NCBI GenBank assembly: GCA_002269645.1
Contig: NIVC01002729.1
Location: forward strand, 33,289 to 97,288
Direction: 5' to 3'
Origin: Macrostomum lignano
Lineage: Eukaryota
Length of the DNA: 64,000 bases
Shown: positions 1 to 63,464 of the stretch, in pieces
Layout: every line of letters starts with the position of its first letter
Position numbering within the stretch: the first letter of the stretch is position 1
Made by a program: the position numbers and the translations under genes
Notes under the pieces: generated by a model
Told to the model about the DNA's origin: nothing
The model's input: the letters and a program-made list of their open reading frames with translations, nothing else
Databases searched by the model: none

Positions 1-804
1 ATCGAGGGCGCTGATATCTGAGTTTGGCGCCTAATTAATGAGCATCGAGGGCGCTGATATCTGAGTTTGGTGCCTAATTAATGAGCATCGAGGGCGCTGA
101 TATCTGAGTTTGGCGCCTAATTAATAAGCATCGAGGGCGCTGATATCTGAGTTTGGCGCCGAATTATTGAGCATCGAGGGCGCTGATATCTGAGTTTGGC
201 GCCTAATTAATGAGCATCGAGGGCGCTGATATTTGAGCTTTGGCGCCTAATTAATGAGCATCGAGGGCGCTGATATTTGAGCTTTGGCGCCTAATTAACG
301 AGCATCGAGGGCGCTGATATTTGAGCTTTGGCGCCTAATTAACGAGCATCGAGGGCGCTGATATTTGAGCTTTTGCGCCGAATTAATGAGCATCGAGGGC
401 GCTGATATTTGAGCTTTTGCGCCGAATTATTGAGCATCGAGGGCGCTGATATCTGAGTTTTGGCGCCTAATTAATGAGCATCGAGGGCGCTGATATCTGA
501 GTTTGGCGCCGAATTAATGAGCATAGAGGGCGCTGATATTTGAGCTTTGGCGCCGAATTATTGAGCATCGAGGGCGCTGATATTTGAGCTTTGGCGCATA
601 ATTAACGAGCATCGAGGGCGCTGATATTTGAGCTTTTGCGCCGAATTAATGAGCATCGAGGGCGCTGATATTTGAGCTTTTGCGCCGAATTAATGAGCAT
701 CGAGGGCGCTGATATTTGAGCTTTTGCGCCGAATTAATGAGCATCGAGGGCGCTGATATTTGAGCTTTGGCGCCGAATTAATGAGCATCGAGGGCGCTGA
801 TATC
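1..804. repeat. Tandem array, 43/44-bp unit, ~18 copies, runs off the window start
   Basis: Unit ATCGAGGGCGCTGATATCTGAGTTTGGCGCCTAATTAATGAGC recurs at 1, 44, ...; 44-bp variants carry TTTGAGCTTT; array ends at GATATC ~804. Confidence 0.95.
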
Positions 805-1651
805 ACTGCACTTCGCAGTCCATATTCTCCGTTTCAATCCCAGCGTGCTGTCCTTGTATTGAATAAGGTCAAAGCTCCTTCGATCACGCTACATGACGTC
901 ACTTTTGTCACGTGAGACCTGCCTCCCTCGTTTTTCGCTGCGTGATTGAATTGATTGAATTGTTCCTAGTAGCACCAGAAATGAGACGACGCGCCTGCGT
1001 ATCTCAATTGGATCTCAACCTGACTGAACTTAACTGCACAGAACAAAGCGCACAGAACCACAGACTGAGTTGTTCGAGAAAATGAATTAATTTTATTAAA
1101 CTAATTACAATTTCAATTCAATTAAACCAATCAGCTTAAAGCATTTTAAATGAAATTGAACACGAGTCTGTAAGCAACGAAGTGTTTCGCGCCCTGCTTG
1201 AAATTCCTTAGTTGCAGTGAGGAGTTTGCTTTTTCTATTTGCTAAATAAAGTCTAACCCAGTGAAATAAAACTTCCTGAAATTTTCTTTGTCGACAAAGA
1301 AATCGCCTGATGATTTGTTTTTCTACCGGGGACAGATCTCTACAAGGAATTGTGGCAACGTCTTGGTCACGCACTCTCCGGGTCTTCTACCTGAGGCTCG
1401 GCAGCTGCTGCAGAACTTCATTTAGTCTGTCCCCATGGCGCCCAGACTGGTGCAGGACCGGAGCAGCTGGTGCCACCGCGAACAAAAGCCGCCTGGAAGT
1501 TGTTTTTGCCACAGACTTTAGTGCTTGCTTATAGCCGGATAAAAAAATTATCCCTCAAATACACAGTTAGAATCATTTCGCTCTCAACTAAGCCTCGTTC
1601 AGTTCAATCATTTAATTGAAGTGGAAGATAAACTTATGATCAAATTGTACT

Positions 1652-2724
1652 GCGTCCCACCAAAGGACCAAGATTAAAGGGTCCATTTCCCATTTCCTTT
1701 GGCTTCCCACCAAAGGACCAAGATTAAAGGGTCCATTTCCCATTTCCTTTGGCTTCCCACCAAAGGACCAAGATTAATGGAAATGGCGTCCCACTAAAGG
1801 ACCAAGATTAATAGAAATGGCGTCCCACTAAAGGACCAAGATTAAGGGAAATGGCGTCCCACCCACTAAAGGACCAAGATTAAGGGAAATGGCGTCCCAC
1901 CCACTAAAGGACCAAGATTAAGGGAAATGGCGTCCCATCCACTAAAGGACCAAGATTAAGGGAAATGGCGTTTCAACTACTAAAGGACCAAGATTAAGGA
2001 AAATGGCGTTCCAACCACTAAAGGACCAAGATTAAGGGAAATGGCGTCCCACCCACTAAAGGACCAAGATTAAAGGAAAATGGCGTCCCACCAAAGGAAC
2101 AAAATTAAAGGGTCCATTTCCCTTTTTTGGCTTCCCACCAAAGGACCAAGATTAATAGAAATGGCGTCCCACTAAAGGACCAAGATTAAGGGAAATGGCG
2201 TCCCACCCACTAAAGGACCAAGATTAAAGGAAAATGGCGTCCCACCAAAGGAACAAAATTAAAGGGTCCATTTCCCTTTTTTGGCTTCCCACCAAAGGAC
2301 CAAGATTAATAGAAATGGCGTCCCACTAAAGGACCAAGATTAAGGGAAATGGCGTCCCACCCACTAAAGGACCAAGATTAAGGGAAATGGCGTCCCACCC
2401 ACTAAAGGACCAAGATTAAAGGAAAATGGCGTCCCACCAAAGGACCAAGATTAATAGAAATGGCGTCCCACTAAAGGACCAAGATTAAGGGAAATGGCGT
2501 CCCACCCACTAAAGGACCAAGATTAAGGGAAATGGCGTCCCACCCACTAAAGGACCAAGATTAATGGAAATGGCGTTCCAACCACTAAAGGACCAAGATT
2601 AATGGAAATGGCGTCCCACCAAAGGACCAAGATTAAAGGAAAATGGCGTCCCACCAAAGGACCAAAATTAAGGGAAATGGCGTCCCACCAAAGGACCAAG
2701 ATTAGGGAAATGGCATTCCACCCA
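1652..2724. repeat. Tandem array, 34-38-bp core unit with longer variant units
   Basis: CCCAC(CCAC)TAAAGGACCAAGATTAAGGGAAATGGCGT repeated; variants carrying GGGTCCATTTCCC...TTTGGCTT recur periodically. Confidence 0.93.
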
Positions 2725-3362
2725 ATGAAATAGTTGCCCGCAGCCGAATTTCATAGATAACAATGCAACAAACGCGCTAATATTTGGTAGCTAAGCGAAA
2801 CACCGATGCAACAAAAACCAGAAATAATAAGCAACTAATTGCGAATGATTGCAAAATTTAATGATCACTTTTTGTTGGCAGCTCCAAACAGGGGGTTGCA
2901 ATGATTGAACAATAGAAAAAATTACCTTGGCTTACAATCTGTTAGACCTGTGAATGCCAACCGAAATAACCCAGAGAATTTGTGACGGTAAGCGGGTGCC
3001 ATCAGCTGATTCTCCCTTTCTCCTCTCTCTCTCTCTCGCTGCTCTATTTTTTTTACTAATCACTTTAAGCTAGCGGGGTCTCAAGTGGTTTTGTTTAATC
3101 CACTTAAAAAAGCAACGCCGGCACGACAGCAGCTGAGAGCAAAAAATGAACCAAATTAAAATTTTCTGACTTTTTCAGTTTAAATTTTAATATGCCTGGG
3201 CTGGTCTAAACATCGCTTTTTAGAATCATTTTTAAAAAGAAACGAGTCGCAAATACACTTCTAAATATACTACTAGTGAGTAGTGAATGATGTAGCGCAT
3301 CGCTTATAAATGCAAGTAGGTTTAGGAGCAGAGAAGTCTCAGGCAAAGGAGGTGGCGGATGT

Positions 3363-4203
3363 CAGATGAGACAGTCAAGTGTCAGACATAAGAGAGACAA
3401 GTGTCAGAAATAAGAGAGAGAGTCAAATGTCAGACAAAAGAGAGACAGTCAAGTGTCAGACTTTAGACAGTCAAGTGTCAGACTAAAGAGAGACAGTCAA
3501 GTGTCAGACAAAAGAGAGACAGTCAAGTGTCAGACAAAAGAGAGACAGTCAAGTGTCAGACATAAGAGAGATAGTCAAGTGTCAGACAAAAGAGAGACAG
3601 TCAATTGTCAGACAAAAGAGCGACAGTCAAGTGTCAGACATAAGAGAGACAGTCAAGTGTCAGACTAAAGAGAGACAGTCAAGTGTCAGACATAAGAGAG
3701 ACAGTCAAGTGTCAGACTAAAGAGAGACAGTCAAGTGTCAGACTAAAGAGAGACAGTCAAGTGTCAGACATAAGAGAGACAGTCAAGTGTCAGACATAAG
3801 AGAGAGAGTCAAGTGTCAGACATAAGAGAGACAGTCAAGTGTCAGACAAAAGAGAGACAGTCAAGTGTCAGACATAAGAGAGACAGTCAAGAAGTGTCAG
3901 ACATAAGAGAGACAGTCAAGTGTCAGACATAAGAGAGACAGTCAAGTGTCAGACATAAGAGAGACAGTCAAGTGTCAGACAAAAGAGAGACAGTCAAGTG
4001 TCAGACATAAGAGAGACAGTCAAGTGTCAGACTAAAGAGAGACAGTCAAGTGTCAGACTAAAGAGAGACAGTCAAGTGTCAGACATAAGAGAGACAGTCA
4101 AGTGTCAGACATAAGAGAGACAGTCAAGTGTCAGACATAAGAGAGAGAGTCAAGTGTCAGACATAAGAGAGACAGTCAAGTGTCAGACTAAAGAGAGACA
4201 GTC
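3363..4203. repeat. Tandem array, 26-bp unit
   Basis: CAGACATAAGAGAGACAGTCAAGTGT repeated ~32 times; explains ORF 3453-3668. Confidence 0.95.
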
Positions 4204-8987: not shown

Positions 8988-10029
8988 CCTTCTGCCGCAG
9001 TTTGCTCACTTGCAAAAACACTCTGTGGATTGTCAATTTTCCTCCTGTGGTTTCTTCTCATCGAACATCTATACGTAATGAATGGCTTCAATCAATTCAA
9101 TACGCCCAGTGAATTTTTGTATTGCACACGTGAATTTCGGCGACTGTTAACAGAACACAAAATTAAGCTTAATTTACGTAGGATAGCATGCAGGGTTTAG
9201 ACAGAATTATCTTTAATCTTTAATCCATAAATCACATGACGAAATTTTTCCTTAGCTATTTAATGGCTGTGTGAATGAGCCTTCCCTTTGAGAATTCATT
9301 TGATATATATGGTCCGGTGTGTCAATTATGACTTCATTAACGAAGACTCTAAATTTTAGTTTAATTTGCGAGCGTACTACTATAGTACGAGCGTATATCC
9401 GATTTATAGGGATTTTTAGCCCTGTCAAAATGGTGAAAATCATTTGAATTTAGGATAGGCTCCCCTTCCAAGCAAAAAGCTTCCATTTTGTCATTGTATT
9501 TTTGCTAAGCTAGACTTTTAACTATATGATAAAATTAAATTTAAAAAGTCGAAAACTTTTTTAAGAAATTAACTGTTGTAAATTTTTCAGTGCCTTTCTG
9601 GCTGTAATTTTAACTACTTAAATAATTACACTATTTTTTGAAAATCTATATTAAGCACTAATTTTGTACATATTTCTCTGCAAATTTCTATACAAAACTA
9701 ATAAAAATTAAACGAAAATGGCTAAGATATTTCTCCCTCTCCGTAGTTACGTCTCAACAGTTTAAACAGTTAAGCCAAATCCAAGGACGATTTTAATTCA
9801 TAATTTAGCAGTCATTGTAATTCATACTTTTTAAATAAATTTGATAGAAATCCTCAAATAATAGAGATGAATTATTAACCATTGTTAATGATGTTACTAA
9901 AATTATTTAAGAAGTTATTAGTTATAAGTTATTTAAACGAGCGTAAGTTACTAAATAATTAAAATAAAACGATATAATTGTACTAATGTGGCAAGTCATG
10001 TTTGAGCCATGGATCGTGCTCTGTGTGTC

Positions 10030-10452
10030 AGATGACATCGAGGCTGCAATTTTATGCCGAGACGCTGATGGACAGGTGACGGAGCTTCCGCGTTGTCAGC
10101 AGTTCGTCTACCTCGGCCAAGCGACCTGTTGCGCTGTCGGCGACTTCAGTTGGCAGGCCACATCATCCACGCAGAGTCGTACTGCCCACAGCCGGTGCAG
10201 GAGGTGCTTCTGCTGCCGGAGTCCAACAGGCGCAGACCGGCTGTGGCGCGCAGCGCTACGCAGGTGACGGCGCGTTGCGGCTCCGGCAGCTGCAGGCACC
10301 CTACCGGCGGGGGCAGGCCCGCACTCGGCGTTTCGTCGACTGCCTGCTGGCTGACGCCGGCGCCCCGGATTCGGTCGGCGGCATGGCTTTCGTTCGCGAC
10401 CTGGCCCTGAGGCGCGCCCTGTGACGTTGACCGCGTATTTTGTTGTTGTTGT
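10030..10452 (+). mobile_element. Degenerate 3' end of a non-LTR retrotransposon (RTE-like)
   Basis: Fragments read CRDADGQVTELPRCQQFVYLG (late RT motif), then RPSDLLRCRRLQLAGHII...PQPVQEVLLL, then YRRGQARTRRFVDCLLADAG...RRAL* (stop 10422-10424), followed by a (TTG)n-like tail. The linker between the first two blocks appears deleted. Confidence 0.7.
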
Positions 10453-10579
10453 GTCGCTGCAAATAATATAATGAGTTTCCTAGGTACTTGGCACCACCAT
10501 TGTGCATCCCAAGGCTACAACAAGAACTAATATCCAGTCCAGAAATTTTCATTATTATTAAACAGACACTGGCACAGGG

Positions 10580-11505
10580 GGGTCAGCAAAGCACCTGTTG
10601 GTGGAAAACAGCTGAGTCCAGCGTAGCTGCAGACTGAGGGGTCAGGCACAGAGCCTGCAAGTCAGAGAGCAAAGTGTCAGCCAGAGTGGTGCAGCGGGCC
10701 TGGCCGCGCGGCAGAGTCTCCCACAGGGCCGGCTGAGCAGCTGGTCGGCCAGCGGGGGCCCGGCGTTCCGTGCATGGGCACGCACACAGTGGCCGATCAA
10801 CATCTGGCGTCGCCTCTGCAGAGTGCGGCCAAAGGGGCGGCACGCTGGTCCGGCCCGCCAGCTCGGCGTTGCTCAGGCACTTCCAGGGCGTTGTGCACGA
10901 GATGGCGATGGCAGGCCTCCAAGCTCGTCTCACAAGTGGCCGTCATGGAAACAGCCTCCAGCCCGTAGGTCAACTGCCCAGCGGAATAGGGCGACCTTCA
11001 GGCTGTCGGTGGCGAGCCGGCAATTGAAGATAGAGCGGAAAAATTGGGAGGCCCGCCAAGCCTGCTGCTAACGGTTGTTGACAATGGCATCCGGGTCAGT
11101 GACCAGGACGCCCAAATACTTGAACTAGTTGCACTGGGCGATGGTGTTGCCGTCCGGTATGTTGTCCTCTGTCTTGCCGTAGTTGATTTGGAGCCACATG
11201 CGTCTCCCCTCATCAGTCAGCCGACTCACCGCCCTCTACGCAGCTTTGGGGCTGCAGCAGATCAGCGCCAGGTCGTTGGGTTAGGCGAGGCAGGTCAGCT
11301 TGACACAGGGAAAGCGGAAGCCGTCTTCATCCCGCAGAGCCAACCCCATGAGGTAGTCGATCAGGAAGACAAATAAAAATGGGGATAAGGTGTCCTCTTG
11401 CCGGACCCCCGGGTGGTGGCAAATTCAAATGTAGGGCCGTGGTCAGTCTGGACAACAGCCTTGGACGAGCTGTAGAGGTCCATGATTGCCTGGACTAGCA
11501 GCTGA
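10580..11505 (-). mobile_element. Decayed non-LTR retrotransposon RT fragment with stops and frameshifts
   Basis: Minus-strand frames give LLVQAIMDLY...TTRGVRQEDTLSPFLFVFLIDYLM, KLTCLA*PNDLALI (degenerate YADD box), QINYGKTE, FKYLGVLV, LTYGLEAVSMT, LSNAELAGR and RRQMLIGHCVR. Confidence 0.8.
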
Positions 11506-11523
11506 GGAACTCAATGGGTCTAC

Positions 11524-11588
11524 GGCTGCCTCGTCTGCCAACTCATTGCCGACCAGGCTTACCGTGGGCTGAGACCCACTGCAACCGG
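11524..11588 (-). mobile_element. Short RNase H-like C-terminal motif fragment
   Basis: Reads LQWVSAHG...GNELADEAA (with a frame slip), resembling the WVPAH-x-G-x-GNE-x-AD motif of RNase H; abuts the RT fragment upstream. Confidence 0.5.
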
Positions 11589-12474
11589 ACAGCTTCAGAC
11601 GGCTTCGAAGTGCTGGGTCTGTGGGCGCTTCAGAGAACGACTGACTTAAAAAAGAAATCAGTCACGCGTTAGTAGAGAAAATATTGCAACAGCTTGAAAT
11701 AATTTTTAGTGCGAAGCCAGTCGCAGGCGAGGGTGAGCGTCCGCCTTTCTTCGTCAAAGCTGCATGTTAGGGAGGCCTTACGTGCAGCGATCGTCTCGAT
11801 AATGGCAGGCTTAGCGGGATCTCCGCAGCAGAGTCACCCACGTCCCACGCAACGCGTCATCCAGACGGACCTTTTGGCGTCGGGGTGGTTCAACCGATGG
11901 CGGACGCCACCGGGCTTCCCAAAATCGAACGCAAATCAATCAACGGGCATGGGCTAGAGATACAAATAACATGCACATGCACACGCACAGTAAAGCACTT
12001 CAGTCATCGGTCGACAGACAGGAGTTCCGCAAAATCCTAGCGTACCGGTAACAACGGAACGCGCACAAAATTGACACGAAGAAATAGTTGATGATCAAAA
12101 GTGTTCACGTTTCTGCATGCTGCACCATCGAGAGTAGGGGTTGTTCAACAAACGGAGGAGATATTCAAGTATTTTAAACCTGTCAAAAACTATAAAATAC
12201 ACTAATCACTATTCAAAGCTTAAACAAGTTTCCCTGTCTAAATTCCTTATAGTTGGCAAAACTACGCATTAAGTGATATTATAAAGTGAATTACCAGCGC
12301 TCGTAAATGAAATCCGATGAAATTTCTATAGAAACAATCTGCCATAGACAAAACCTGTTCGATTCGGAATGATTAATCTATTAAATAAATCTTCAGCTCG
12401 AATTACTCGGGCTACGAGCTATGCAAGTTCTTATATTCGGTTGAAACAGACTAAATACTATATAGGACTAGAGA

Positions 12475-15400
12475 ATGTTTAGCAACAACAGTAAAGTTGA
12501 AGTTCAAAAGAAGTTGAGATTAAAGTCCACCAATCGGCTCTCCCCAGCTCTGTGGCCAGTTAAGGCTTCGGTTAAGCGTTTCGAGGAAGTTGACGAAGGA
12601 TGCCAGTCGGTGGCGGTTCCGCGGTGCGCCAGTCGTTTGGAGACGCTGGCGTACGCCGTCCTCTTTGCGGCGGCGTTTATCTACGGAGCCTACGACTTCT
12701 ATGAGGCCATTGGGTCGCAGCCAAATCTAGGTAATTAATTGGTTGACTTCCTTTCGCTTGATGAAATATGAAATATGAGATTGGTAATTTTTGGTGTTTA
12801 AAATGGCGTTCATTGGAATCGAAATGTCACTCATTAGATTCGAAATGGCACCTTTATATCCTATTAATCCCATACACATTTTTTATTTATAGAGCCATGA
12901 ATGTTTGAGTTCGAGGTGTGACGCATTAACTATTTATACATATGCGATTCTCTTTTCATTGCAGTTCTGCCAGCGGAGCAGCTCACCGCTGGATGGCTTG
13001 CCGATTGGCAGGTGAGGCAAAATATATTGCTATGCCAAAGTTTGAATGCAACTGTTAAATCAAAATCTTCATAGTAATCGTAATATATTCATAAACAAAG
13101 AAACTTACAATTATATACACTTTGGAATTGACAGGAATCTCTGTCGATACCGTTGGAGTCGGAAATGATGGCCGGTTATAAATATTACTTGCTCGCTTGT
13201 CTCGGATTTCTGCTGGTCAGTCAGTTGACTCTTCGATTAGCGCCGAGATGGGTGAGCTAATTAGCGTTTTTAATGAGACTGTACAGCTGTTGCACTGTTC
13301 ACAAGTGCCCTTTATCCTGTTCTCAAGTCTCTTTTTTCCGGTGTCAAGTGTCCTCAAACCTATTCTCAAGTGTCCTCAAACCTATTCTCAAGTGTCCTCA
13401 AACCTATTCTCAAGTGTCCTCAAACCTGTTCTCAAGTGCCCTCTAACCTGTTATCAAGTGTCCTCAAACCTGTTCTCAAGTGTCCTCAAACCTGTTCTCA
13501 AGTGTCCTCAAACCTGTTCTCAAGTGTCCTCAAACCTGTTCTCAAGTGTCCTCAAACCTGTTCTCAAGTGTCCTCAAACCTATTCTCAAGTGTCCTCAAA
13601 CCTGTTCTCAAGTGTTCTCAAACCTATTCTCAAGTGTCCTCAAACCTGTTCTCAAGTGTCCTCAAACCTATTCTCAAGTGTCCTCAAACCTATTCTCAAG
13701 TGTCCTCAAACCTATTCTCAAGTGTCCTAAAACCTGTTCTCAAGTGTCCTCAAACCTATGCTCAAGTGTCCTCAAACCTGTTCTCAAGTGTCCTCAAACC
13801 TATTCTAAAGTGTCCTCAAACCTGTTCTCAAGTGTCCTCAAACCTGTTCTCAAGTGTCCTCAAACCTGTTCTCAAGTGTCCTCAAACCTGTTCTCAAGTG
13901 TCCTCAAACCTATTCTCAAGTGTCCTCAAACCTATTCTCAAGTGTCCTCAAACCTGTTCTCAAGTGTCCTCAAACCTATTCTCAAGTGTCCTCAAACCTA
14001 TTCTCAAGTGTCCTCAAACCTATTCTCAAGTGTCCTAAAACCTGTTCTCAAGTGTCCTCAAACCTATGCTCAAGTGTCCTCAAACCTGTTCTCAAGTGTC
14101 CTCAAACCTATTCTAAAGTGTCCTCAAACCTGTTCTCAAGTGTCCTCAAACCTATTCTCAAGTGTCCTCAAACCTGTTCTCAAGTGTCCTCAAACCTGTT
14201 CTCAAGTGTCCTCAAACCTGTTCTCAAGTGTCCTCAAACCTGTTCTCAAGTGTCCAACACTCCGTAGTCAAGTGCTCTACACCCTGTTTTTGGATGTCCA
14301 CCACACAATGCAAAAATATCGTAAACGCTCCTGTTGTTCTCGTAGTCCTCTATAACCTAATCTGCTCATCTCTCATATTGACGGTCTCAAAATATGAACT
14401 CAGGTTCACTACCTATCAACCGCTGGGTGTACATTCGCTGCGACAGTCCTGGTGATTGGCGCCAGAAAATCGCTGTACCTGCTGCTGCTGTTCTGCGGTG
14501 AGATCGTCCTGGCTTATTTTTCTTGGGCCGCCGTTTGGGCGCTGGGCCTGGCAGCTCTGATGCTGCAGAATTCAAATCACTGGATTGACATTCTTGACAC
14601 TGGCACTCTCAGTCAAAAAGGCTACATGGAATCTCTGTTCTACCCAATCTCTGGCTACCTGTACTGCCGCTGCATCTCCGCTGGACTCAGCCTCAACCAA
14701 ATGCTGCGGGACCAGAGACGCCAACCTGCAGATGAGGCACAGCAGCTGAGCCTGCTCCAGTTCCTTAAACTGCACCTTCCCCGAGCTCTGGCTTACGGAT
14801 TTTACCTGCCCTGGCACTTTTCCGGCCCGATCCTCACCTTTGCTGACTTCTGTCGGGAGGCTGAGAGACCCGACAGGCTGGTGTGGAAGCCGAACCTGCT
14901 GCTGCTACTGGCGTGGCGAGCGACTCGCCTGTTGGTGTGGATGCTGCTGCTTCAGGTGCTGCATCATTTCCTACCTGTTGGAGCATTTCTGGAGAGCATT
15001 CGGTCTTACGAGTCCGTGCCCTACAAGCGGCTCGTGTTCTCAATGTACCTGCATGGCCAGAACTTCATGCTGGTCTACGTGCAGCTGTACGGCTGGCCGG
15101 GTCTCGTGTCCAGCATTGACGGAGTCGAGCTGCCGCACTGGCCCGACTGCATCAGCCGAGTCTATACTTACAGGCAGATGTGGCGCGTGTTCGACAGGGG
15201 GCTGGCCTCCTTCATGTACAGCCACATCTACATCCCCATGGGAGGCAGTCGGCACGGCATTGTGAGACAGGTAGCTGCTGTGGCTGCCAGCTTCGCCTTT
15301 GTCTCCATTTACCACGGCGACTCGACCAGCGTCCGCATCTGGGCTGCGCTGAACGCGTTTCATTTACTGCTGGAGATTGCGGCCTGCAGGCTGTACGAAT

Positions 15401-18400
15401 GGAAGCTGAAGGCTTGGCTGGTGAGGTGGCAATTGTTTCCATGTTATGTATATCAGGATAGCCCCGCTTTTCTTATTAAATAAAACAAAATTTGTCAACA
15501 GGTTTGGCTCTTGAATGATGAAAGTAGCGGATTGCTAACCTAACCATTCTCGGTGGGGCTTAAGCGTGAGCGACATCCTTAAGCTTTTACACAGACACGG
15601 CGCGTAGCAAAAGAGGGATTTGTTTTGTAAACTGCAAATCAAAGTTTTGCATGTTTACTCAATCTAAATACTCACCCTTAACTAAGGCATAGCTAGCTCC
15701 CTCGTCTGTATACTTGTATGCAAGAGCATAAAGTACTCTTAACTATTAATAACTAACCATCGAACCCGGTGAACCCTGTCTGATGGGCAGTTCTTGTGCT
15801 TGCACTCAATGAGACAGCAGGTTCACAGACAGCTCGGTGGGAAGAGCCCGATAACGGGCCCTTCCAAACCCCTCAGTGGGAAATTTTCAACTTATTCTGG
15901 TGGCCCGAGATTTATTTCCTCATAAACCAGACGACCGAAATTCCGTATGAAAATAGATTAAACTAGCCATCTAGGGCTTTGGGGCGCCCAATAAGCAAGG
16001 AAAAAATAATTCAAGGAAAACAATTAAAATAGCAAATTTTCTTAAAAAACCAATTCCTTCTTCAATTTTATAAATCACCTTATTCATTCAAGTAAAACTG
16101 TCACGGACAAAGATGCTTGCTATGAATTTCTTTTTTTTATAAAACTAACCAAAAGACAACAAAATAAAGCTTTCACAAAGATAGCAGGCATTCCCCCTAA
16201 ATAGAAAACATCCCCACAGATAGCAAGCATCCCCCAGATAGCAAGCATCCCGCAGATAGCAAGCACCCCCAAATAGCAAGCATCCCCCATCCAAGAGTCA
16301 GCAACCCCAGATAGCAAGCATCCCCAGATAGCAAGCACTGCCAGATACCAAGCATCCCCCAGATAGCAAGCATCCCCCAGATAGCAAGCATCCCGCAGAT
16401 AGCAAGCATCCCCCAGATAGCAAGCACCCCCCATCCAAGAGTCAGCAACCCCATATAGCAAGTATCCCGCAGATAGCAAGCACCCCCCATCCAAGAGTCA
16501 GCAACCCCAGATAGCAAGCATCCCCCAGATAGCAAGCATCCCGCAGATAGCAAGCATCCCCCAGATAGCAAGCATCCCGCAGATAGCAAACATCCCCCAG
16601 ATAGCAAGCATCCCCCAGATAGCAAGCATCCCCCAGATAGCAAACATCCCCCAGATAGCAAGCATCCCCCAGATAGCAAGCATCCCCCAGATAGCAAGCA
16701 TCCCGCAGATAGCAAACATCCCCCAGATAGCAAGCATCCCCCAGATAGCAAGCATCCCCCAGATAGCAAACATCCCCCAGATAGCAAGCATCCCCCAGAT
16801 AGCAAGCATCCCCCAGATAGCAAGCATCCCGCAGATAGCAAGCATCCCCCAGATAGCAAGCACCCCCAGATAGCAAGCATTCCCCAGATAGCAAGCATCC
16901 CCCAGATAGCAAGCATCCCCCAGATAGCAAGCATCCCGCAGATAGCAAGCATCCCGCAGATAGCAAGCATCCCGCAGATAGCAAGCATCCCGCAGATAGC
17001 AAGCATCCCCCAGATAGCAAGCATCCCCCAGATAGCAAGCACCCCCCAGATAGCAAGCATTCCCCAGATAGCAAGCATCCCCAAGACAGCTCAATTAAAC
17101 GTCCGAACTTGGGATTTACACAGCTTATCGTTAGGTGCATCTGGCTGGCAAATCGTTTGATAAAAAAAATCAGTTAGTGAAACCTGAGGCTTGAGACAAA
17201 ACACAATTTATAGCTCGAATTGGTCAGCATTCAGTTGCTACGATCTTTGAGTCGTTGCAATATTATTATTATAAAATGAAACTAACCGATTTCAGAGTCG
17301 CCGCGTTAGTCCCGCCAACCACCAGCGCCTGGTGGCCTACATTATCGGCTTCAATCTGGCCGTGACATCCTGCTTCATTTTTGTCTTCCTAATTGGCGAC
17401 GTATCTGCGCTGCTGTTTATAGTCGAAATTTTCAAGCCTCTACTGCTTTACAGTGAGTTGTAATTCCAATTTTTCCGGGTGTAGAAGCTCGAACTCAAGG
17501 CTGCGCAACAATTTTAATTATGCCAATCCCATTAAACAAGTCAGCACCAAGTGCCACAATTAAGTGCTGTAACCAACCAGAATACCTGATTTGAAAATTC
17601 TGTAAAATCAACTTGATTGGCTGTATTGTCGATGACCGAGTGTTGTCCTGTGGCGGTGGCTTATAGTCACGCAAGTATTCAAAGATAATGGTCGCCACAT
17701 TGACAACTGTTAGTAGAAGGACGCTGAAAATTCGATTTTCTTAGAAATGAGCTGGATTTTCTCGAGCATATCTGTCTATGACACAAATTCAGCACTACGC
17801 TTTCTCATGAGAAAGGGAATGTGAACTTAGAGTCAAAATGGAGCCCCAAACATTCCTATTCCGGTTTCTCTACGTCTACGCCAATCCCTTTATTTGGAGC
17901 CAAGTAGCTCCCGTTGTGCCTGAAACCGACCACTTTAGCATTTGGGGATCTCTATGGGGAGAAATGGGATAAATTATTATTCATGTGAACCAAAAGCTCT
18001 AGAATGGAGCCTGAAGCATTGGATCACGGTTCCTCTATGTCAATCCCTTAATTTGGAGCTTCAAATGCTTAAATGACGAGATGACCACGATAAACGCTCT
18101 TTATTTGTATGAAGAATTGTAGTGATAGTTATCTTTTAACAATGTGTCTGTTATCCTCCTACCCAAGCTCTCATTGTGTTACCTCGCCTTGATGGAGACA
18201 CATTATAGACAGATGATTTCTACCTCGACGAAGTGGAGGGTTAACTCGACGTTTCGAGACGTTTCGGAAGGCTTCCGATCACATGAAATCCCCATTTCTC
18301 CCCATAGAGATCCCCAAATTCTAATTGGTGGTCGGTTTTTGAGATAACGGGAGCTATTTGGCTCCAAATGAAGGGATTGGCGTAGAAAAATCGGGACCGA

Positions 18401-18649
18401 ATATTTGAGTGTAGCCGCCTTCTACTTCAGCTGTCCATGGGCCGCTATCTAGAGAGCAAAGGGATCCGTGATCTAAAATATATTATATCTACAACTACAT
18501 CAACGATCCACTGCATTGCAGGACCCTGGTGGCATCTGTTTGTGGGCCTATTATTGACCTATTTCACTGTCCAACTGTCTCTCCGATACGAAGAATGCGT
18601 CGAGGCTAAGAGAAAGAAAGTCAACAAGGTCTGTCAGAAAATTAATTGA
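12475..18649 (+). CDS. HHAT: Hedgehog acyltransferase-like MBOAT, paralogue 1, ~573 aa; exons 12475-12730, 12965-13011, 13135-13251, 14404-15420, 17296-17452, 18522-18649
   Basis: Six GT-AG exons sum to 1722 nt with consistent phases. Motifs match recalled HHAT: RLETLAYAVLF (cf. RWELALYLL), PDCISRVYTYRQMWRVFDRGL (cf. PRCVSTMFSFTGMWRYFDVGL), FAFVSIYHGD (catalytic His) and RPWWHLF. Exon structure is identical to paralogue 2. Confidence 0.88.
13295..14255. repeat. Intronic tandem array, 22-bp unit (HHAT-1 intron 3)
   Basis: TCAAGTGTCCTCAAACCT(G/A)TTC repeated ~43 times; explains ORFs 13197-14355. Confidence 0.95.
16180..17083. repeat. Intronic tandem array, 18-bp unit (HHAT-1 intron 4)
   Basis: GATAGCAAGCATCCCCCA repeated, with three interspersed CCATCCAAGAGTCAGCAACC variant units. 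Confidence 0.95.
17876..18385. mobile_element. MITE-like foldback element with ~95-bp imperfect inverted repeats (HHAT-1 intron 5)
   Basis: 17876-17969 (CTACGCCAATCCCTTTATTTGGAGCCAAGTAGCTCCCGTT...TTTGGGGATCTCTATGGGGAGAAATGGGA) is the approximate reverse complement of ~18290-18385. No TSD identified. Confidence 0.65.
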
Positions 18650-19194
18650 TCTGAAACACCTGGAAACATATTCAAATTCATATATCAATAATTCATTCAC
18701 AGATCCGTATGAAATATGACTGCTAAATATTAATTAATATTTTATTTACTTAGTTAACTACTATTCCCCATCAACCTGAACCAATATGTTGATTATTCGG
18801 ATTAGCAAGGTGACTGTAATTTTCCCAAGTGCTTATCCTGCTTTGATTTGAATAAATAATCCTGAAGCTTACTGTATGAGTTCTAATCTGAACTTAAATT
18901 AATGCGTCTCGTGGATAGACTACAGCACAAGCAAACATTAATGAATATATATAGTCACTGAAGTCTAACAATCTATTGAATAAAAATCTGATCGGCATAC
19001 AAACAGCTCTCCCAATTAAACTTTAGTGAATTTGAGTCATCCGTTCTCTTTTATATATGAGCTGAGTGAAGGGTAAATATAAATAAATAAGGATAACAAT
19101 GGCAGAAGAGCTGTGGGGCGACCTGGCGCAATGCCCTCGGCAACATGGTCCCACAGCCAGTGCTGACACCAATTCTGCCCATCCCGCTGGCTCC

Positions 19195-19345
19195 TGAGCA
19201 CATGCAAGCGCGCCAATACTGTACGCAGGCACGCACTCACACACACGCTCACACAGGGTGTACAGCGGCCCTGACTTACCTGATCGTCAATCATGTACAC
19301 TGTCTGTGCCTTGGGGTTTGGCACTCATGGCTGTGAATCGCATGA
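19195..19345 (-). mobile_element. Diverged fragment of the SINE family at 25367-25723
   Basis: Shares CAAGCGCG...GTACGCAGGCAC...GTGTACAGCGGCCC...CATGTACAC...GCCTTGGGG with the SINE body; a further fragment lies at ~22185-22235 (+). Confidence 0.65.
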
Positions 19346-19923
19346 CCCGGTGTCAAAAAAAAATGGTCCGAATGACGTCCTGAAATCAGAGTCCTCTGGT
19401 ACGCATTATGTACAAAGTTTTATAGTCGAAATGACGTCCGTTTGCTACTGACGCGGGACTATTTTAGTACTGGGAAATTTGTCTTCTATTCTACTATTAG
19501 TAGAAAATGAAACTTTTTTGTTTCTATACAATACAGTACGGTGTTTAGGGTTGGTTGCTGAAATTTACTTGTTTATTTTTATTTCAATTATTTGCTGCAA
19601 AGGTTAACCACTTCTGGCCAACAGAAAATATTTTACGGTATATACAGTATACTGAGTATAAATGTTTACGAGCAAACGTACTTATTACCAGGAAAGGAAA
19701 ATAGCAAAATTTTTAATGATCGGAAATAAGAATAAAACGCAGATTAAAAGTTATTGAAATAGTTACTAAACTTACTCGAAATACACTACAGCTACAGTAA
19801 AATTTAAACCTGTCGCCCAACAAGTCGTTACTAAGCAGAAATACATGTAAAAACTAGCGAGAAACGAAGCAAAAGCATGGTTTTTAAAATCTGTCAGTCT
19901 TCTAATCATCGTCGCTACTGGAA

Positions 19924-20120
19924 TTAATTATTCTTCGACGCCGTTGCCTGCTGATGCCGAGCCGCATCTGGCTGTTGGTGCCCAGCCGGAGGTCCTACTG
20001 TTCGGCGGCGCTTCACCTCGGCGGCTTCTCTCTCTGAAGCGTGCTTCAGTAGGTCTCGAATCGCACCCTCTACCTCAGCCTCGGAGGGCCTCTGTCTCTC
20101 ATCAGGGTAGAGATCCTCAA
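19924..20120 (-). other. Orphan terminal-exon-like ORF with a helical BEN/DUF4806-like ending
   Basis: After acceptor CACGCAG the frame reads EDLYPDERQRPSEAEVEGAIRDLLKHASER..., resembling from memory the E-V-E-x-A-I-x-x-(W/L)-L-K-H-A-x-(D/E)-R ending of transposon-associated BEN-like proteins. No upstream exon could be joined. Confidence 0.3.
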
Positions 20121-20169
20121 CTGCGTGTGCAGGTTGTGATGGGGTGAATGGATTTGGTTTGTTAATTTG

Positions 20170-20342
20170 ACAACAGACCTCCAAGGAAAACAGCGACAAT
20201 ATTCAAGAAAAGAGAACAAGAAGGGATCGAAGCCCACCTGGCCAATATTCGTGCACAAGCCCTAAATGAATGTGGCTGCCGGAATCGAACCCGGGACCGT
20301 GGTTTGCGAGTCGGACGCGTTTACCGCCGAGCTGCTCTGCCC
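20170..20342 (-). mobile_element. tRNA-derived SINE-like element
   Basis: Minus strand GGGCAGAGCAGCTCGGCGG (A-box-like)...GGGTTCGATTCCGG (B box); no proper cloverleaf acceptor stem. Confidence 0.5.
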
Positions 20343-20734
20343 AAAGCAACAGACATCATCTGGATAGTTGTGTTTCGGTCTGTGTATTGCATATTTTTTA
20401 GAGTTTGAATTGCTGTGTTGAGCAAATTTGAAGCAAACTGCAATTAATCGTTTGAAGCGCTGTGCTGCATTGAAGTCCTTTGACTTTGCAGCCCTCTTTA
20501 GCTGCAGGCCGCTGACGCTATTACTAAACGAGTGATAAAAGGAGGAGAAAGGGGAAGAAATCCCATCGCCAGAATTCCATTCCCTGTAATCCATCAGCGG
20601 AAATCCCATGTCTTGAATCTCATCTTCCAAATCGTCTCCAAATCCTCTACAAAACCTTTCAAACACCATATCTTGCTTTCCCTGTTTGCAGAAACTGACT
20701 GCTGCCATTATCCAGACTCCAGACCCAGCCTCTC

Positions 20735-21195
20735 CTGTCTGCTCTCTCATCTCTAGTCTCTCATCTCTCATCTCTCCTCTCTGCGCTCTCATCTTTATCC
20801 TATTCTTTCTCCTCACTACTTTCTCCTCTCTCTACTCTCTTACCTCTCTCATCTCTCTGATCTTTCATCTCTCGTCTCTCTCCCCTCTCTCTCTTCTATT
20901 TCTTCTCTCTTCTCTTTCGTCTATATTCTCTCCTCTCTCCTCTTTCTCCTCTATTTCCTCGATCTGTACTCTTTTATCCCTCCTCTCTCCCATCTCCTCA
21001 CCTCTCTCCTGCTCTCTCGTTTCTTCCCTCTACTCTACTCTATTCTCTTTCTTCTTCTCTTCTCTCTCCCTCTTCATTCCCGCCTCACTCCTCTCTTCTC
21101 TTCCACCTGTCATCTCTAATCTCCCCTCTCTCATGTCTACTCTCTTTTCTATCATCTCTCCTCTCTTCTCTTTTTACTCTTCTCTTCTCTTGCGC
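20735..21195. repeat. CT-rich low-complexity tract
   Basis: Almost pure pyrimidine on the + strand; explains ORF 20686-21216. Confidence 0.85.
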
Positions 21196-21840
21196 CACGC
21201 ACGAAGTTTAGTTTAGTTTAGAGGCCTTTAGTTTAGAGAAGTATAATTTAGAGGCCTAAATTATCGATCGTGAACCTATTATACTGTACGAACCGTTCTA
21301 AATACGCACACAACAAGCACAAAGTAAAACGGCCCAATTGGGGGCCACACCAAACGCAAATTACACAGAGAAGAATGGAAATGATACGATTAATTGTCAG
21401 TTTATGTGGATAAATCATGATAGCTTGAATGTGCGTACGCAACCCCCCCCCCAAACTTTATCTCTGACATATCACAAAAATGACTACAATCTTTGCAGAC
21501 ATCAAATTTTCTTCATGAAACTGATTTTCAATTTTTCATTAAAATCTTCTCCGTTAAACGACTATCTAATTATATCAATATTATTATCTTATCTTATCTT
21601 ATTGAAGTGGCAGCTTTTGTTTTCCATCTCCATATTACACGTCCATTTTATTCCTTCTTCACCAATGCGGTACACTCGCATGAATGTCTATGGTCGAACT
21701 TGTACTTTTCAAAATCTACAGTGCTCTGTTCAACCCCTGCAAGGCTGCAAAACAAACAGCATGTTTTACTTAAGTCAGAGAAGAAAAGCTTAGCTTAAAA
21801 GAACGTTCAGCCTTGTCCTACCAGATAAGATCGAACATCC

Positions 21841-24800
21841 ATGACGATGGCTTCCACTTCGTCAACTGCAAACTCGGTGCAGACAAGCGGAGACCTTCAA
21901 GGCAAGGAAGCCGAACCGATCAAACGCTCAGCCGCCGCCTCGGTGTCAACTTCCGTTCCCCCCAGCGCTGGGCCTCGGGAAACCCTGCTGTACGCCTCCG
22001 TGTTCGCTGCCGCATTCGGCTACGCGGCTGGCGACTTCTATCTAAACATTGGCAGGTCGCCAAAGAAAGGTTCGATATGATAAATTCACTCTGGTGGCAA
22101 TCAGGTGTATAGGTACATGTTGGCCAGGTATAAATATCGTTCGAGAATCTTGTCGTGTGACTTCCGTCCAAGAGAAAGTCTGTGCTGCTGTACACCCTGT
22201 ATGAGCGTGTGCCTGCGCACGTATCCGTGTGAGTGCTCAGGGATCAGCGAAGTGGGCCGGACTGCTTGCCAATAGTAGTGTACTTCTATTACTTCTATTA
22301 GTAACAGTGTACTTCGTTATTCCTTATCAGAACTCTATCAATCATATGTCGCTCGTAAAACCTTTCTATCTAGCTCGTACGCTATCATTATAGAACAGTA
22401 TAATTATTTAATTGTTTCGCATTCGCTTGCAGAGTTGCACCCTATGACGCTAACGAATGGCTGGCTATCCAAGTGGATGGTAAGAAGGATCCGAGAGAAT
22501 GGATTAATTTCTTAACTTGATCTTTAGTGTTGTAGTCTCTGCATGGTAACTATCTCTGAAAAAACTACAAGTTCAATGTGTTTAAAGGAGTTGCTTAGAT
22601 GTAGTCTTTGTCTCGCGTAGATACACCGCAGGCAATAAAATGTTATCAGCTCGTTCAGCCTCGCCGGTGGTCCAATCTTAATCCACAGGAGCGCTCCTTT
22701 TCGTTGGAATCGGATCTGAAAGACGGCTACAAATTCTTAATCTTTGCTAGCGTCGGCTTCTTGTTGGTCAGTCAGGTCACGATTCGTTTGGCTCCGAGAT
22801 GGGTGAGTCAATATTCAATGCTGGCGGAATCGATTTCTAATGACAAGATAGGAGAGACCGTAACAGAGTGATCAGTCAGGATAGGAGTGACAATGGCAGA
22901 GTGATCAGTCAGGATAGGAGTGACAGTGGCAGATTGATCAGTCAGGGTAGGAGTGACAGTGACAGAGTGAACAGTCAGGAAGGAGTGACAGTGACAGAGT
23001 GATCAGTTAGGATAGGAGTGACAGTGACAGAGTGCTCAACCGAAATGCCATATCCTGCAAGAGCAGCTGAGAAACTGTCAAGTTCCCCATTCCTCATCAG
23101 GTGCACTACCTGGCTACTACAAGCTTCACCTTGGCTGTGACAGCGGCTATCCTTGGTTACAGAACAGCGATGTACTTTCTGGTGTTGCACTGCGGTGCTG
23201 TCTGCATGGGATATTTCTCCCAGTTCGGTGTCTGGCTGTTTATTCTGTCGGCAATGATGCTGCAAAACTCGGATTACAGCAGCGCGCTCTTTCAAGTCCT
23301 GGATCTCGAAGGTGATTACTCTCACCTGTTCTACCCAATCTCTGGCTACCTGTACTGCCGCTGCATCTCCGCTGGACTCAGCCTCAACCAAATGCTGCGG
23401 GACCAGAGACGCCAACCTGCAGATGAGGCACAGCAGCTGAGCCTGCTCCAGTTCCTTAGACTGCACCTTCCCCGAGCTTTGGCTTACGGATTTTACCTGC
23501 CCTGGCACTTTTCCGGCCCGATCCTCACCTTTGCTGACTTCTGTCGGGAGGCTGAGAGACCCGACAGGCTGGTGTGGAAGCCGAACCTGCTGCTGCTACT
23601 GGCGTGGCGAGCGACTCGCCTGTTGGTGTGGATGCTGCTGCTTCAGGTGCTGCATCATTTCCTACCTGTTGGAGCATTTCTGGAGAGCATTCGGTCTTAC
23701 GAGTCCGTGCCCTACAAGCGGCTCGTGTTTTCAATGTACCTGCATGGCCAGAACTTCATGCTGGTCTACGTGCAGCTGTACGGCTGGCCGGGTCTCGTGT
23801 CCAGCATTGACGGAGTCGAGCTGCCGCACTGGCCCGACTGCATCAGCCGGGTCTATACTTACAGGCAGATGTGGCGCGTGTTCGACAGGGGGCTGGCCTC
23901 CTTCATGTACAGCCACATCTACATCCCCATGGGAGGCAGTCGGCACGGCCTTGTGAGACAGGTAGCTGCTGTGGCTGCCAGCTTCGCCTTTGTCTCCATC
24001 TACCACGGCGACTCGACCAGCGTCCGCATCTGGGCTGCGCTGAACGCACTGCAGCTGCTTCTGGAGACCCTGGCCTGCGCTTTCTATGAGAGGAAGTTGA
24101 AGACGTGGCTGGTGAGTCCGGGGATCAGATTGACTGACCCAGAGTGAGCTCCGAGTGACTGATCCAGAGTGAGCTCCGAGTGACTGACCCAGAGTGAGCT
24201 CCGAGTGACTGACCCAGAGTGAGCTCCGAGTGACTGACCCAGAGTGAGCTCCGAGTGACTGACCCCAGAGTGAGCTCCGAGTGACTGACCCAGAGTGAGC
24301 TCCGAGTGACTGACCCCAGAGTGAGCTCCGAGTGACTGACCCCAGAGTGAGCTCCGAGTGACTGACCCAGAGTGAACTCCGAGTGACTGACCCAGAGTGA
24401 ACTCCGAGTGACTGACCCAGAGTGAGATCCGAGTGACTGATCCCAGAGTGAGCTCCGAGTGACTGACCCCATAATGATGATACAGAATGAACTCGAAATG
24501 ATTTGATTCTGGGCTAGTTCAGGACTGGACTTAAGTCCATTGTGAGAGCATGCTTAATTCTGTAATGATTAGGGAAACACTCGTACCTTTAAATATTTCA
24601 GAGCCTGATCCTGAGTCCAAAAAGCCACCAGCGCTTGGTTGCGTACATTATTGGCTGCAATCTGATCCTCACGTCTTGTTTCATCTTTGTTTTTCTCATG
24701 AATACTCTGGACGCTTTGTGGCTCGTTGTTGAAATCTTCAAACCGCTTCTTTTTTATAGTAAGGCTACATTTCTTACATCCATGTACATGTATATTGCAA

Positions 24801-24981
24801 TAAGCCTTTCTTTACAGATGAAAATAGCCTACCCAATCGAAACTATAAACTTAATAAACACATTGCAGGACCCTGGTGGCATCTTTTTTTGACATTAACC
24901 CTATCCTACTGCAGCGTACAAATCTCATTGTGGTATGAAAGTCGCGATCAGTCCAAAAATAAGGTCCAGAAAGACAATTGA
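21841..24981 (+). CDS. HHAT: Hedgehog acyltransferase-like MBOAT, paralogue 2, ~556 aa; exons 21841-22069, 22433-22479, 22689-22802, 23101-24111, 24602-24758, 24869-24981
   Basis: Exons sum to 1671 nt with the same phases as paralogue 1; 47-nt exon 2 and 157-nt exon 5 lengths are conserved; catalytic YHG and MWRVFD are intact. The exon 1 donor (G|GTTCGA) is weak. Confidence 0.87.
22847..23034. repeat. Intronic tandem array, 33-bp unit (HHAT-2 intron 3)
   Basis: GATAGGAGTGACAGTGACAGAGTGATCAGTCAG, ~5.5 copies; same family as 63465-64000 (inverted). Confidence 0.9.
24130..24470. repeat. Intronic tandem array, 25-bp unit (HHAT-2 intron 4)
   Basis: GACTGACCCAGAGTGAGCTCCGAGT, ~13 copies, starting ~18 nt after the donor; same family as 60268-62378 (inverted). 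Confidence 0.93.
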
Positions 24982-25366: not shown

Positions 25367-25723
25367 TTTTTTTTCTTAGAGGCAGGGGGGTTGTGTGCAC
25401 CCTAGCGCACTTTAAGCGACATAGGCACACAACCGGCGAGAGGCATTACTGCGGCATACAAGCTGAGCAGGCATACAAGCGCGCGGATACGTACGCAGGC
25501 ACACACTCACACAGGAGTGTACAGCGGCCCTTAACTTTATATTATCGTTAGGCATGTACACTTCACTGCGCCTTGGGGGGTTGGCTCTCAAGGCCGTTAA
25601 TTGCACGAGCAGAGCCAAGCCGAGATTCCAATTCAGCCCCAAAATAATGTGACTGCACTTGGAATCGAGCCTGGGTCGCTGGCACACCAGAGCAGCTGCA
25701 CTACCGCTGGGCTACGGCCCCCC
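25367..25723 (-). mobile_element. Full-length tRNA-derived SINE (copy A) with A-tail and TSD
   Basis: Head GGGGGCCGTAGCCCAGCGG (A box)...GGCTCGATTCC (B box); tail CTCTAAGAAAAAAAAA; TSD TATTTGTTGATGA(T) at 25353 and 25725. Confidence 0.88.
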
Positions 25724-26607: not shown

Positions 26608-26961
26608 GGGGGCTGTAGCCCAGCAGTAGCACAGCTGCTCTGGTGTGCCAGCGACCCAGGCTCGATTCCAAGTGCAATCACATTAATTTGGGGCTAAATT
26701 GGAATCTCAGCTTGGCTCTGCTCGTGCAATTAACGACCTTGAGAACCAACCTCCCAAGGCGTAGTGAAGTGTACATGCCTAAAGATAATATAAAGTTAGG
26801 GCCACTATATACTCCTATGTGAGTGTGTGCCTGCGTATGTATCCGCACGCTTATATGCCTGCTCAGCTTATATGTAGCAATAATGCCTTTCGCCGGTTGT
26901 ATGTCTATATCGCTTAAAGTGTGCCAGGATACACACAACCCCCCTGCCTCTAATAAAAAAA
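26608..26961 (+). mobile_element. Full-length tRNA-derived SINE (copy B), head-to-head with copy A, heavily transition-mutated
   Basis: Colinear with the reverse complement of copy A over ~350 bp; TSD ATATTGATAGGC at 26595 and 26962. Confidence 0.88.
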
Positions 26962-46674: not shown

Positions 46675-47835
46675 ATGAGTGGCAAGAAAGTGGTGCAAAT
46701 TCCGCCCGGCTTCAAAGACCTGCTGCAGGACTTCACTGTGGCTGTGCTCAAGGAGACGCCTGAGGATGTCGTGGAATTCGCAATCGAGTATTTCACCAGG
46801 CTGCGCATGGAAAAAATCTCGCAGAGTCAGGAGGGGGCCGAGGCCGCCGCCGAAGCTGCCGAAGCCGACTCAGACATCGACGACGAGCCTATGCAGGCGC
46901 CGCCGCCGCGTCGCGGACCTCGCCGAGTTGCCGTCGCCGGCGAGAGCTTCGACCCGGAAAAAGAGGACGACGACGACACTCCGGTAGTGAACCACCCCAA
47001 GACCGAGGAGCAGCGGCAGCGCCTGAACGAGGCCGTCAAGCACATCCTGCTGTTCCGCTGCCTGGACGAGGACCAGATGCGTGACGTCATCAACGCCATG
47101 TTCGAGCGGCGCTGCCAGCCGGGCGAGAAGGTCATCACGCAGGGCGAGGACGGCGACAATTTCTACGTGATCGAGTCGGGAGTCTACGACATCTACGTCC
47201 TGATCAACGGCCAGGACACCAAGGTCGGCCAGTACGATAACAAAGGCTCCTTCGGCGAGCTCGCCCTGATGTACAACGCTCCGCGGGCTGCCACCATCCA
47301 ATGCGCCTCCTCCGGCAGCATCTGGGCGATGGACCGTGACACTTTCCGACGTCTGGTGCTGAAGAAGGCCTTCCAGAAGCGAGTGATGTACGAGAACCTC
47401 ATCGACTCCGTGCCGCTGCTCAAGGAGCTGGCGCCCTACGAACGGATGAACATCGCCGACGCGTTGAAGTCCCGCGTGTACGAAGACGGCGACTGCATCA
47501 TCGTCCAGGGCGACGTTGGCAACGAGATGTACTTTATCGAGGATGGCGAGGTGCGAATCACGCGGAAAACCCAGGACGGCAGCGGCGAGATGGAGCTGTC
47601 CAGACTGCAGAAGGGCGGCTACTTCGGCGAGCTGGCCCTGCTGACCAAGCAGCCCCGAGCCGCCAATGTCTACGCCTGCGGCGGCAAGTGCAAAGTAGCC
47701 GTGCTGGACGTCGGCTCGTTCGAGCGGTTGCTCGGCCCCTGCCTGGACATCATGCGCCGCTCCATCGACAACTACCAGCAGCAGCTCACCAGTCTGTTCG
47801 GCAGCATGGAGGCCGTGCCCGACCTGCGCGCCTGA
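46675..47835 (+). CDS. PRKAR2: cAMP-dependent protein kinase type II regulatory subunit, 386 aa, intronless CDS
   Basis: RII-type D/D domain [35 protein letters not shown]; inhibitor site RRVAV; two cAMP-binding cassettes [18 protein letters not shown] and [18 protein letters not shown]. Confidence 0.95.
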
Positions 47836-54510: not shown

Positions 54511-54524
54511 CCTGAGAGAGTGTC

Positions 54525-63399: not shown

Positions 63400-63464
63400 C
63401 TGATGAGGAATGGGGAACTTGACAGGTTCTCAGCTGCTCTTGCAGGATATGGCATTTCGGTTGA

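Follow-up and report, generated by a model that had tools for sequence, protein, structure and literature searches.

Among tandem duplicates, non-allelic gene conversion is a textbook mechanism, exemplified by the gamma-globin genes HBG1/HBG2 and by RHD/RHCE. Models of similarity-dependent concerted evolution, including 'escape' models, are reportedly those of Walsh (1987) and of Teshima and Innan (2004). The human red/green opsin genes provide a further example, mosaics of converted and unconverted segments within duplicates are well described and such mosaics of divergence are expected, and polymorphism common to both paralogues is a strong sign of conversion (PMC3924837). Reported conversion tracts span a few hundred base pairs, are enriched in guanine plus cytosine (GC) and depend on similarity, and similarity-dependent 'escape' models predict self-reinforcing, sharp-edged islands once the flanks have diverged past a threshold (bioRxiv 10.1101/135152). 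Here, we analyze the final 64 kb of contig NIVC01002729.1 of the flatworm Macrostomum lignano (the window, whose base 64000 is the last of the contig's 97,288 bp) and characterize a 722-bp tract of near identity within exon 4 of two deeply diverged tandem genes, which we term HHAT-1 and HHAT-2.

The HHAT pair resembles the opsin, HBG and RH cases in having a discrete near-identical tract of low synonymous divergence inside diverged paralogues, in the incongruence of tract and flank trees, in shared polymorphisms, perhaps in GC enrichment, and in proximity in cis (8.7 kb), and its sharp edges are of the kind that the escape models predict. In the opsins most of the gene is homogenized and a small selected region resists, whereas in the HHAT pair 42% of the coding sequence is homogenized and divergence is complete elsewhere. 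The contrast is also extreme, with a flank synonymous divergence of 0.72 against 99.2% tract identity, and three probable subgenome copies of a neopolyploid repeat it, breakpoint for breakpoint. We conclude that the tract is very probably a concerted-evolution island, in which non-allelic (interlocus) gene conversion has homogenized tandem HHAT-like MBOAT paralogues. In the literature we found no paper that connects gene conversion to the HHAT genes of M. lignano; the locus is a new, very clean case of a well-known mechanism and reveals no new one.

A sharply bounded tract in two old paralogues

All DNA compared here was drawn from a single assembly, Mlig_3_7 (GCA_002269645.1), and the translated exon matches M. 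lignano proteins at 99% identity. Spliced models reconstructed for HHAT-1 and HHAT-2 match the annotated proteins PAA55620.1 (P0012) and PAA55621.1 (P0017) exactly, and the genes stand head-to-tail in tandem, 8.7 kb apart and colinear across all six exons (Table 1). An initial annotation of this stretch had reported a gapless match within exon 4, and both its location and its details prove exact by alignment and reading frame: at a constant offset of 8691, positions 14635–15356 and 23326–24047 align over 722 bp with no gaps and six mismatches (99.2% identity; HHAT-1/HHAT-2: 14768 A/G, 14788 C/T, 15039 C/T, 15159 A/G, 15259 A/C, 15309 T/C), of which four are synonymous and two exchange K for R and I for L. 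The abrupt divergence that it had described inside the same exon is likewise present. Immediately 5' of 14635 identity at this offset falls to the random level, and in the last 64 bp of exon 4, 3' of the tract, it is ~66%; the bordering peptides read GYMES versus DYSH before the tract and FHLLLEIAACRLYEW versus LQLLLETLACAFYER after it. HHAT-1 and HHAT-2 differ at 99 of 225 positions in the 5' exon-4 flank and at 22 of 64 in the 3' flank (121 of 289 in total), against 6 of 722 in the tract.

We estimated synonymous (pS) and nonsynonymous (pN) divergence by the Nei–Gojobori method (NG86) and located breakpoints by scanning the full coding-sequence alignment for the pair of breakpoints with maximum chi-square, using 200 permutations. 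In the tract pS is 0.028 and pN 0.004, while the remaining coding sequence has a pS of 0.72 and a pN of 0.33. Synonymous divergence is far from uniform along exon 4 itself, whose flanks alone reach a pS of 0.62–0.71; the uniformity that the initial annotation had named as a refutation of its reading is thus not seen. Amino-acid identity outside the tract is 39–68% per exon segment. Synonymous differences number 4 of 176 in the tract and 159 of 219 elsewhere (Fisher 4e-53). The best segment in the scan is 14635–15356 to the base (chi-square 378; permutation maximum 22), and at the gene-wide rate the binomial probability of at most six differences in 722 positions is 1e-75. Because synonymous sites are saturated everywhere outside the tract, HHAT-1 and HHAT-2 are old duplicates.

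Both proteins are predicted to be HHAT-like MBOAT acyltransferases. The MBOAT domain PF03062 scores 85.4 and 83.6 bits in the two (Pfam gathering score 27), with expectation values (E) of 6e-24 for HHAT-1 and 2e-23 for HHAT-2, and their nearest solved relative is human HHAT (7q1u/7mhy, E 5e-30 for HHAT-1), residues 263–525 aligning with human residues 199–461 in the 7q1u alignment. Counting by hand on that alignment places D404 and H444 of P0012 opposite human D339 and H379. Their codons (15193–15195 and 15313–15315 in HHAT-1; 23884–23886 and 24004–24006, shifted by 8691, in HHAT-2) fall inside the tract, which therefore covers the predicted catalytic core. The initial annotation's view of an exchange confined to the catalytic region thus stands as a description, although nothing ties the boundaries to function or selection.

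A further HHAT-like MBOAT tandem pair lies on contig NIVC01000421.1 (locus L002, positions 386–3738 and 10001–17437) and is ~40% identical in amino acids to HHAT-1 and HHAT-2; one of its members, P0004, shares their six-exon layout. This pair is unconverted and served as our control. This second tandem pair brings the number of HHAT-like genes in M. lignano to at least five. The M. lignano proteins share with the HHAT/Rasp/GUP1 clade of MBOATs the domain and the conserved Asp339/His379 equivalents, and differ from it in the arrangement of these genes, at least five in number, in two tandem clusters.

The same mosaic on three contigs

The sequenced DV1 line carries three homeologous subgenomes, S, L1 and L2, with a single-nucleotide polymorphism (SNP) divergence of 1.9–2.4% (PMC10733133). 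We found the HHAT-1/HHAT-2 pair on two contigs besides the window, NIVC01004183.1 (L001) and NIVC01003352.1 (L004), with non-coding sequence 92–99% identical to it, and these three contigs are probably the S, L1 and L2 versions of the locus. Two further hits (L003, identical to positions 2475–28649, and L008) are the window itself and were not counted as separate copies, and NIVC01002730.1 (L006) was rejected as a fourth copy, being 99.8–99.9% identical to L001 and hence the same haplotype. Breakpoints 14635 and 15356, in window terms, recur in all three contigs, with 5–6 differences between HHAT-1 and HHAT-2 in each, and every contig carries private SNPs within the mosaic. The tract is also contained in proteins P0002, P0013 and P0014, derived from the ML2 assembly (UniProt A0A1I8 entries), which drew on the same PacBio reads as Mlig_3_7 and was made with a second assembler.

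Both genes on three contigs give six copies, and the tract is present a seventh time in HHAT-3, the window's third paralogue. Between the two genes, 99–104 of 225 positions differ in the 5' flank of exon 4 and 22 of 64 in the 3' flank, with 0–10 differences within a gene, and copies group strictly by gene (label-permutation rank 1 of 35 in both flanks). By contrast, tract distances between genes (3–12) are not above those within a gene between contigs (2–8), and the tract has no gene structure: the between-minus-within difference is −0.72, and 30 of the 35 labelings score at least as high. Among the six copies there are no fixed differences between HHAT-1 and HHAT-2 in the tract, against 113 in 295 flanking exon-4 columns. 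The tract appears homogenized even between locus copies, as HHAT-2 of the window and of L001 differ at 4.4% of positions in the 5' exon-4 flank and at 1.0% in the tract (Fisher p 0.002).

Four tract sites (14788, 14907, 15039 and 15324) are polymorphic in both genes. Positions 14788 and 15039, 251 bp apart, show the same split, with window HHAT-1 and L001 HHAT-2 set against the rest; at 14907 the window's three copies all carry A and the four on the other contigs all carry G; and 15324 unites HHAT-1 and HHAT-2 of the window. A four-gamete test finds nine incompatible site pairs and a minimum number of recombination events (Rm) of 4, or 3 when the doubtful copy in HHAT-3 is disregarded. The breakpoints shared by the three locus copies place the founding event before their split, and exchange has probably been repeated since. 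Of the recent non-allelic conversion proposed by the initial annotation, conversion between old paralogues is upheld; a single recent event is at odds with the age of the breakpoints and with the shared polymorphisms.

GC content at third codon positions (GC3) is 0.76 in the tract and 0.60 and 0.63 in the non-tract parts of the two genes. The same region of the unconverted P0004 is also GC-richer (GC3 0.634 versus 0.559), so that the tract's excess, about twice that of its P0004 equivalent, is attributable only in part to conversion. The raised GC3 fits GC-biased conversion without proving it. We rejected GC3 as a clue to donor and acceptor, since its non-tract values are similar in both genes.

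Several peculiarities of individual copies were also observed. Across the first 225 bp of exon 4 (23101–23325; L001 26318–26542), HHAT-2 of the window and of L004 differs from that of L001 at 10 positions, all transitions, which change 4 amino acids; the corresponding part of HHAT-1 differs by 0.4% between contig versions. Intron 4 of HHAT-1 measures 8.3 kb in L001 (12190–20446) and 1.9 kb in the window (15421–17295), and ~6.3 kb of L001 (13734–20015) without a window counterpart is probably an insertion or satellite expansion. In HHAT-1 of L004 (2642–3657) one homopolymer deletion in the tract breaks the frame, and the NCBI model is a 254-aa fragment. Two ML2 models of HHAT-2, P0003 and P0019 (A0A1I8IKW8 and A0A1I8G1D0), omit most of the tract (...SSALFQ joined to NFMLVY...), which likely reflects gene prediction led astray by frameshift errors and not a genuine isoform.

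HHAT-3 and other features of the window

The initial annotation had considered two paralogues only. That pair is confirmed, and the window holds a third copy of the tract on the minus strand, in exon 4 of a gene truncated by the contig end (HHAT-3, Table 1). Exons 5 and 6 of HHAT-3 are intact, spliced, end in a stop codon and have diverged from both other genes, being 75–78% identical in nucleotides to HHAT-2; because they recur at 97–99% identity on two other contigs, NIVC01002730.1 and NIVC01003353.1, the gene is real. Exon 4 of HHAT-3 is >99% identical to that of HHAT-2 over its full length, with zero differences in both exon-4 flanks. Over 1,092 bp of unique sequence HHAT-3 and HHAT-2 are separated by four substitutions and four single-base deletions, and the HHAT-3 tract differs from the other window copies by 3–5 substitutions plus four 1-base deletions in short homopolymers, one of which it has in common with L004 HHAT-1 (at the site equivalent to 14779). 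These frame-breaking deletions are probably unpolished PacBio errors, although real frameshifts or pseudogenization of HHAT-3, and of L004 HHAT-1, are possible.

The similarity between HHAT-2 and HHAT-3 runs into both introns up to 33-bp and 25-bp minisatellites, beyond which the introns are unalignable, and in all sequence examined these units were found only beside exon 4 of the two genes. Either HHAT-2 and HHAT-3 underwent a second, larger exchange, of at least 1.1–1.6 kb, or the contig end is chimeric and was joined via the array of 25-bp units. Only 600 bp of the contig remain upstream of HHAT-3 exon 4, and chimeric scaffolds are frequent in this assembly. We lean toward a real exchange because the 25-bp array also adjoins HHAT-3 exon 5 on another contig. 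Searching the protein collection with an HHAT-3-specific C-terminal peptide returned no candidates for a full independent HHAT-3, and on two sister contigs (L007 and L009, reached via the gene for a protein kinase A regulatory subunit) exons 5 and 6 are present and the sequence examined ends before exon 4.

Minisatellites are exceptionally dense between 12000 and 64000, with ~20 large arrays of periods 9–49 bp and lengths up to 2.1 kb, several of them inside HHAT introns, and they generate long spurious open reading frames and strong composition skews. A ~3-kb tandem duplication at 95% identity is made of 14-bp and 19-bp satellite arrays. The window also encodes, in an intronless reading frame, a cAMP-dependent protein kinase regulatory subunit with RIIa and cNMP-binding domains, and the three contigs that bear its gene encode it without any difference. 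A ~150-bp repeat (67–73% identity), possibly a small dispersed element, follows both HHAT-1 and HHAT-2 and recurs once inverted.

Table 1. Positions of HHAT genes, tract copies and neighbouring features in the window
Feature	Position	Strand	Details
Tract, HHAT-1 exon 4	14635–15356	+	aa 218–458; alignment, chi-square scan
Tract, HHAT-2 exon 4	23326–24047	+	alignment, chi-square scan
Tract, third copy, HHAT-3 exon 4	62457–63174	-	end 62457 derived from exon-4 limits
HHAT-1	12475–18646	+	573 aa; PAA55620.1 / Mlig018939.g1; MBOAT family, six exons
HHAT-1 exons	12475–12730, 12965–13011, 13135–13251, 14404–15420, 17296–17452, 18522–18646	+	spliced translation
HHAT-2	21841–24978	+	556 aa; PAA55621.1 / Mlig013745.g1; six exons
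HHAT-2 exons	21841–22069, 22433–22479, 22689–22802, 23101–24111, 24602–24758, 24869–24978	+	spliced translation
HHAT-3	59169–63399	-	truncated by contig end; exon 4 63399–62393, exon 5 ~60156–60000, exon 6 59282–59169
33-bp minisatellite, HHAT-2 intron 3	22844–23038	+	
25-bp minisatellite, HHAT-2 intron 4	24131–24469	+	marks 3' limit of HHAT-2/HHAT-3 similarity
25-bp minisatellite array, HHAT-3 intron 4	60276–62376	-	84 copies; unit as in HHAT-2 intron 4
33-bp minisatellite upstream of HHAT-3 exon 4	63462–64000	-	unit as in HHAT-2 intron 3; contig ends inside
Other arrays inside HHAT introns	13295–14255, 16179–17090		
Tandem duplication	51465–54510, 54523–57580		~3 kb
Protein kinase regulatory subunit	46675–47835	+	386 aa
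~150-bp repeat	19194–19345, 25463–25608, 26722–26866		third copy inverted

Mechanism, alternatives and consequences

We propose that a break in one copy would have been repaired homologously with the paralogous exon 4 as template, replacing 722 bp that include the catalytic Asp and His codons. The resulting mosaic, with both breakpoints, was in place before the three locus versions separated, and exchange among copies has probably continued within the tract since then. Exchange would stay inside this island, the flanks having diverged too far for recombination; only inside it would similarity be high enough for recombination to start and resolve, as similarity-dependent conversion predicts (bioRxiv 10.1101/135152). 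In a bolder and rather unlikely version, the tract would be a long-lived catalytic cassette that three paralogues and three subgenomes have exchanged without interruption, and so kept identical, ever since an ancient duplication, while the N- and C-terminal modules diverged freely around it.

Could purifying selection, or constraint at the codon level, have conserved the core without DNA exchange? It is the family's most conserved part, with an amino-acid identity to P0004 of 0.49 inside the tract region and 0.31 outside, and it holds both catalytic-residue equivalents. As the initial annotation had argued, selection alone is insufficient: a synonymous divergence of 0.03 in the tract against saturation elsewhere refutes this explanation, which we regard as virtually out of the question, and identity drops abruptly rather than gradually. 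The homologous core of the unconverted L002 pair is only 70% identical in nucleotides and 61% in amino acids, with no comparable tract, and constraint alone therefore does not yield 99%. Scans with Rfam and for tRNAs found no embedded RNA gene that could have caused the conservation. A second concern is that a truly divergent HHAT-1 or HHAT-2 core was overwritten by a paralogue consensus during assembly, read correction or polishing. Mlig_3_7 was built by Canu from PacBio reads and Pilon-polished with short reads and RNA-seq data (PMC5730564), and it is redundant, with chimeric scaffolds holding 36% of assembly length (PMC10733133); the homopolymer deletions in the tracts of window HHAT-3 and L004 HHAT-1 show that polishing was imperfect. 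We nevertheless consider such an artefact highly improbable: the mosaic recurs in three contigs that were assembled separately and have SNPs of their own, and the tract also in the three ML2-derived proteins, the boundaries are base-exact and in frame, reads from a core ~30% divergent, as the flanks and the L002 pair are, would not cross-map or be co-corrected, and PacBio reads, which far exceed 722 bp, are anchored in the unique flanks.

Two further explanations accept an exchange and differ on its kind or number. Reciprocal exchange by double unequal crossover, or replication template switching, would have the same sequence outcome as non-reciprocal conversion, a homologous segment replaced in place, and the locus is dense in recombination-prone minisatellites. 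Two coincident crossovers within ~1 kb between tandem copies would however be required, single unequal crossovers would alter copy number, and the tract's length lies within the range reported for conversion tracts (bioRxiv 10.1101/135152), all of which make these routes improbable. A more serious contender is a single conversion shortly before the locus copies split, with no later exchange and with the shared variants arising from recurrent mutation or Pilon mis-polishing. One ancestral event is the simplest source of breakpoints that agree in all three copies, the within-contig paralogue distance (5–6) is close to the between-contig orthologue distance (2–8), as if the event fell near the split, and the short reads used in polishing multi-map. 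Yet the common split at 14788 and 15039, 251 bp apart, would be rare under recurrent mutation, setting HHAT-3 aside still leaves an Rm of at least 3, paralogues are no further apart than orthologues and the tract is unstructured by gene, and HHAT-2 of the window and L001 differs by 4.4% in the 5' flank and just 1.0% in the tract. We therefore judge a single event unlikely.

Some points do weigh against the interpretation of the tract as an island of recurrent conversion. It contains only six informative sites, and the short reads used in polishing multi-map within a tract present in at least seven copies, so individual SNP states, and with them the shared polymorphisms and four-gamete failures that speak for recurrence, could in part be noise from polishing. 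Orthologues from other Macrostomum species were not found in the protein collection searched. Moreover, a first conversion would be mechanistically difficult if the cores had already diverged to ~70% identity, and the tract would then have arisen in a late event or else have been kept up as an island ever since the duplication. That the tract exists is robust; the fine SNP pattern is less so.

Conversion at this locus is notable for the juxtaposition of saturated flanks with 99.2% identity, for the breakpoints present in three locus copies, and for the possible third gene. Unless the tract is masked, trees or dS-based (synonymous-divergence) ages that use these HHAT-like genes will come out wrong, and short-read mapping to exon 4, RNA-seq quantification, RNA interference and CRISPR designs will strike two or three genes together. 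Conversion could be timed against the genome duplication, and homeologue exchange could be tested at the locus. If the tract does prove to be a long-lived island, it would offer a natural system for measuring rates of interlocus and inter-homeologue conversion in a transgenesis-capable flatworm, datable against a known recent whole-genome duplication.

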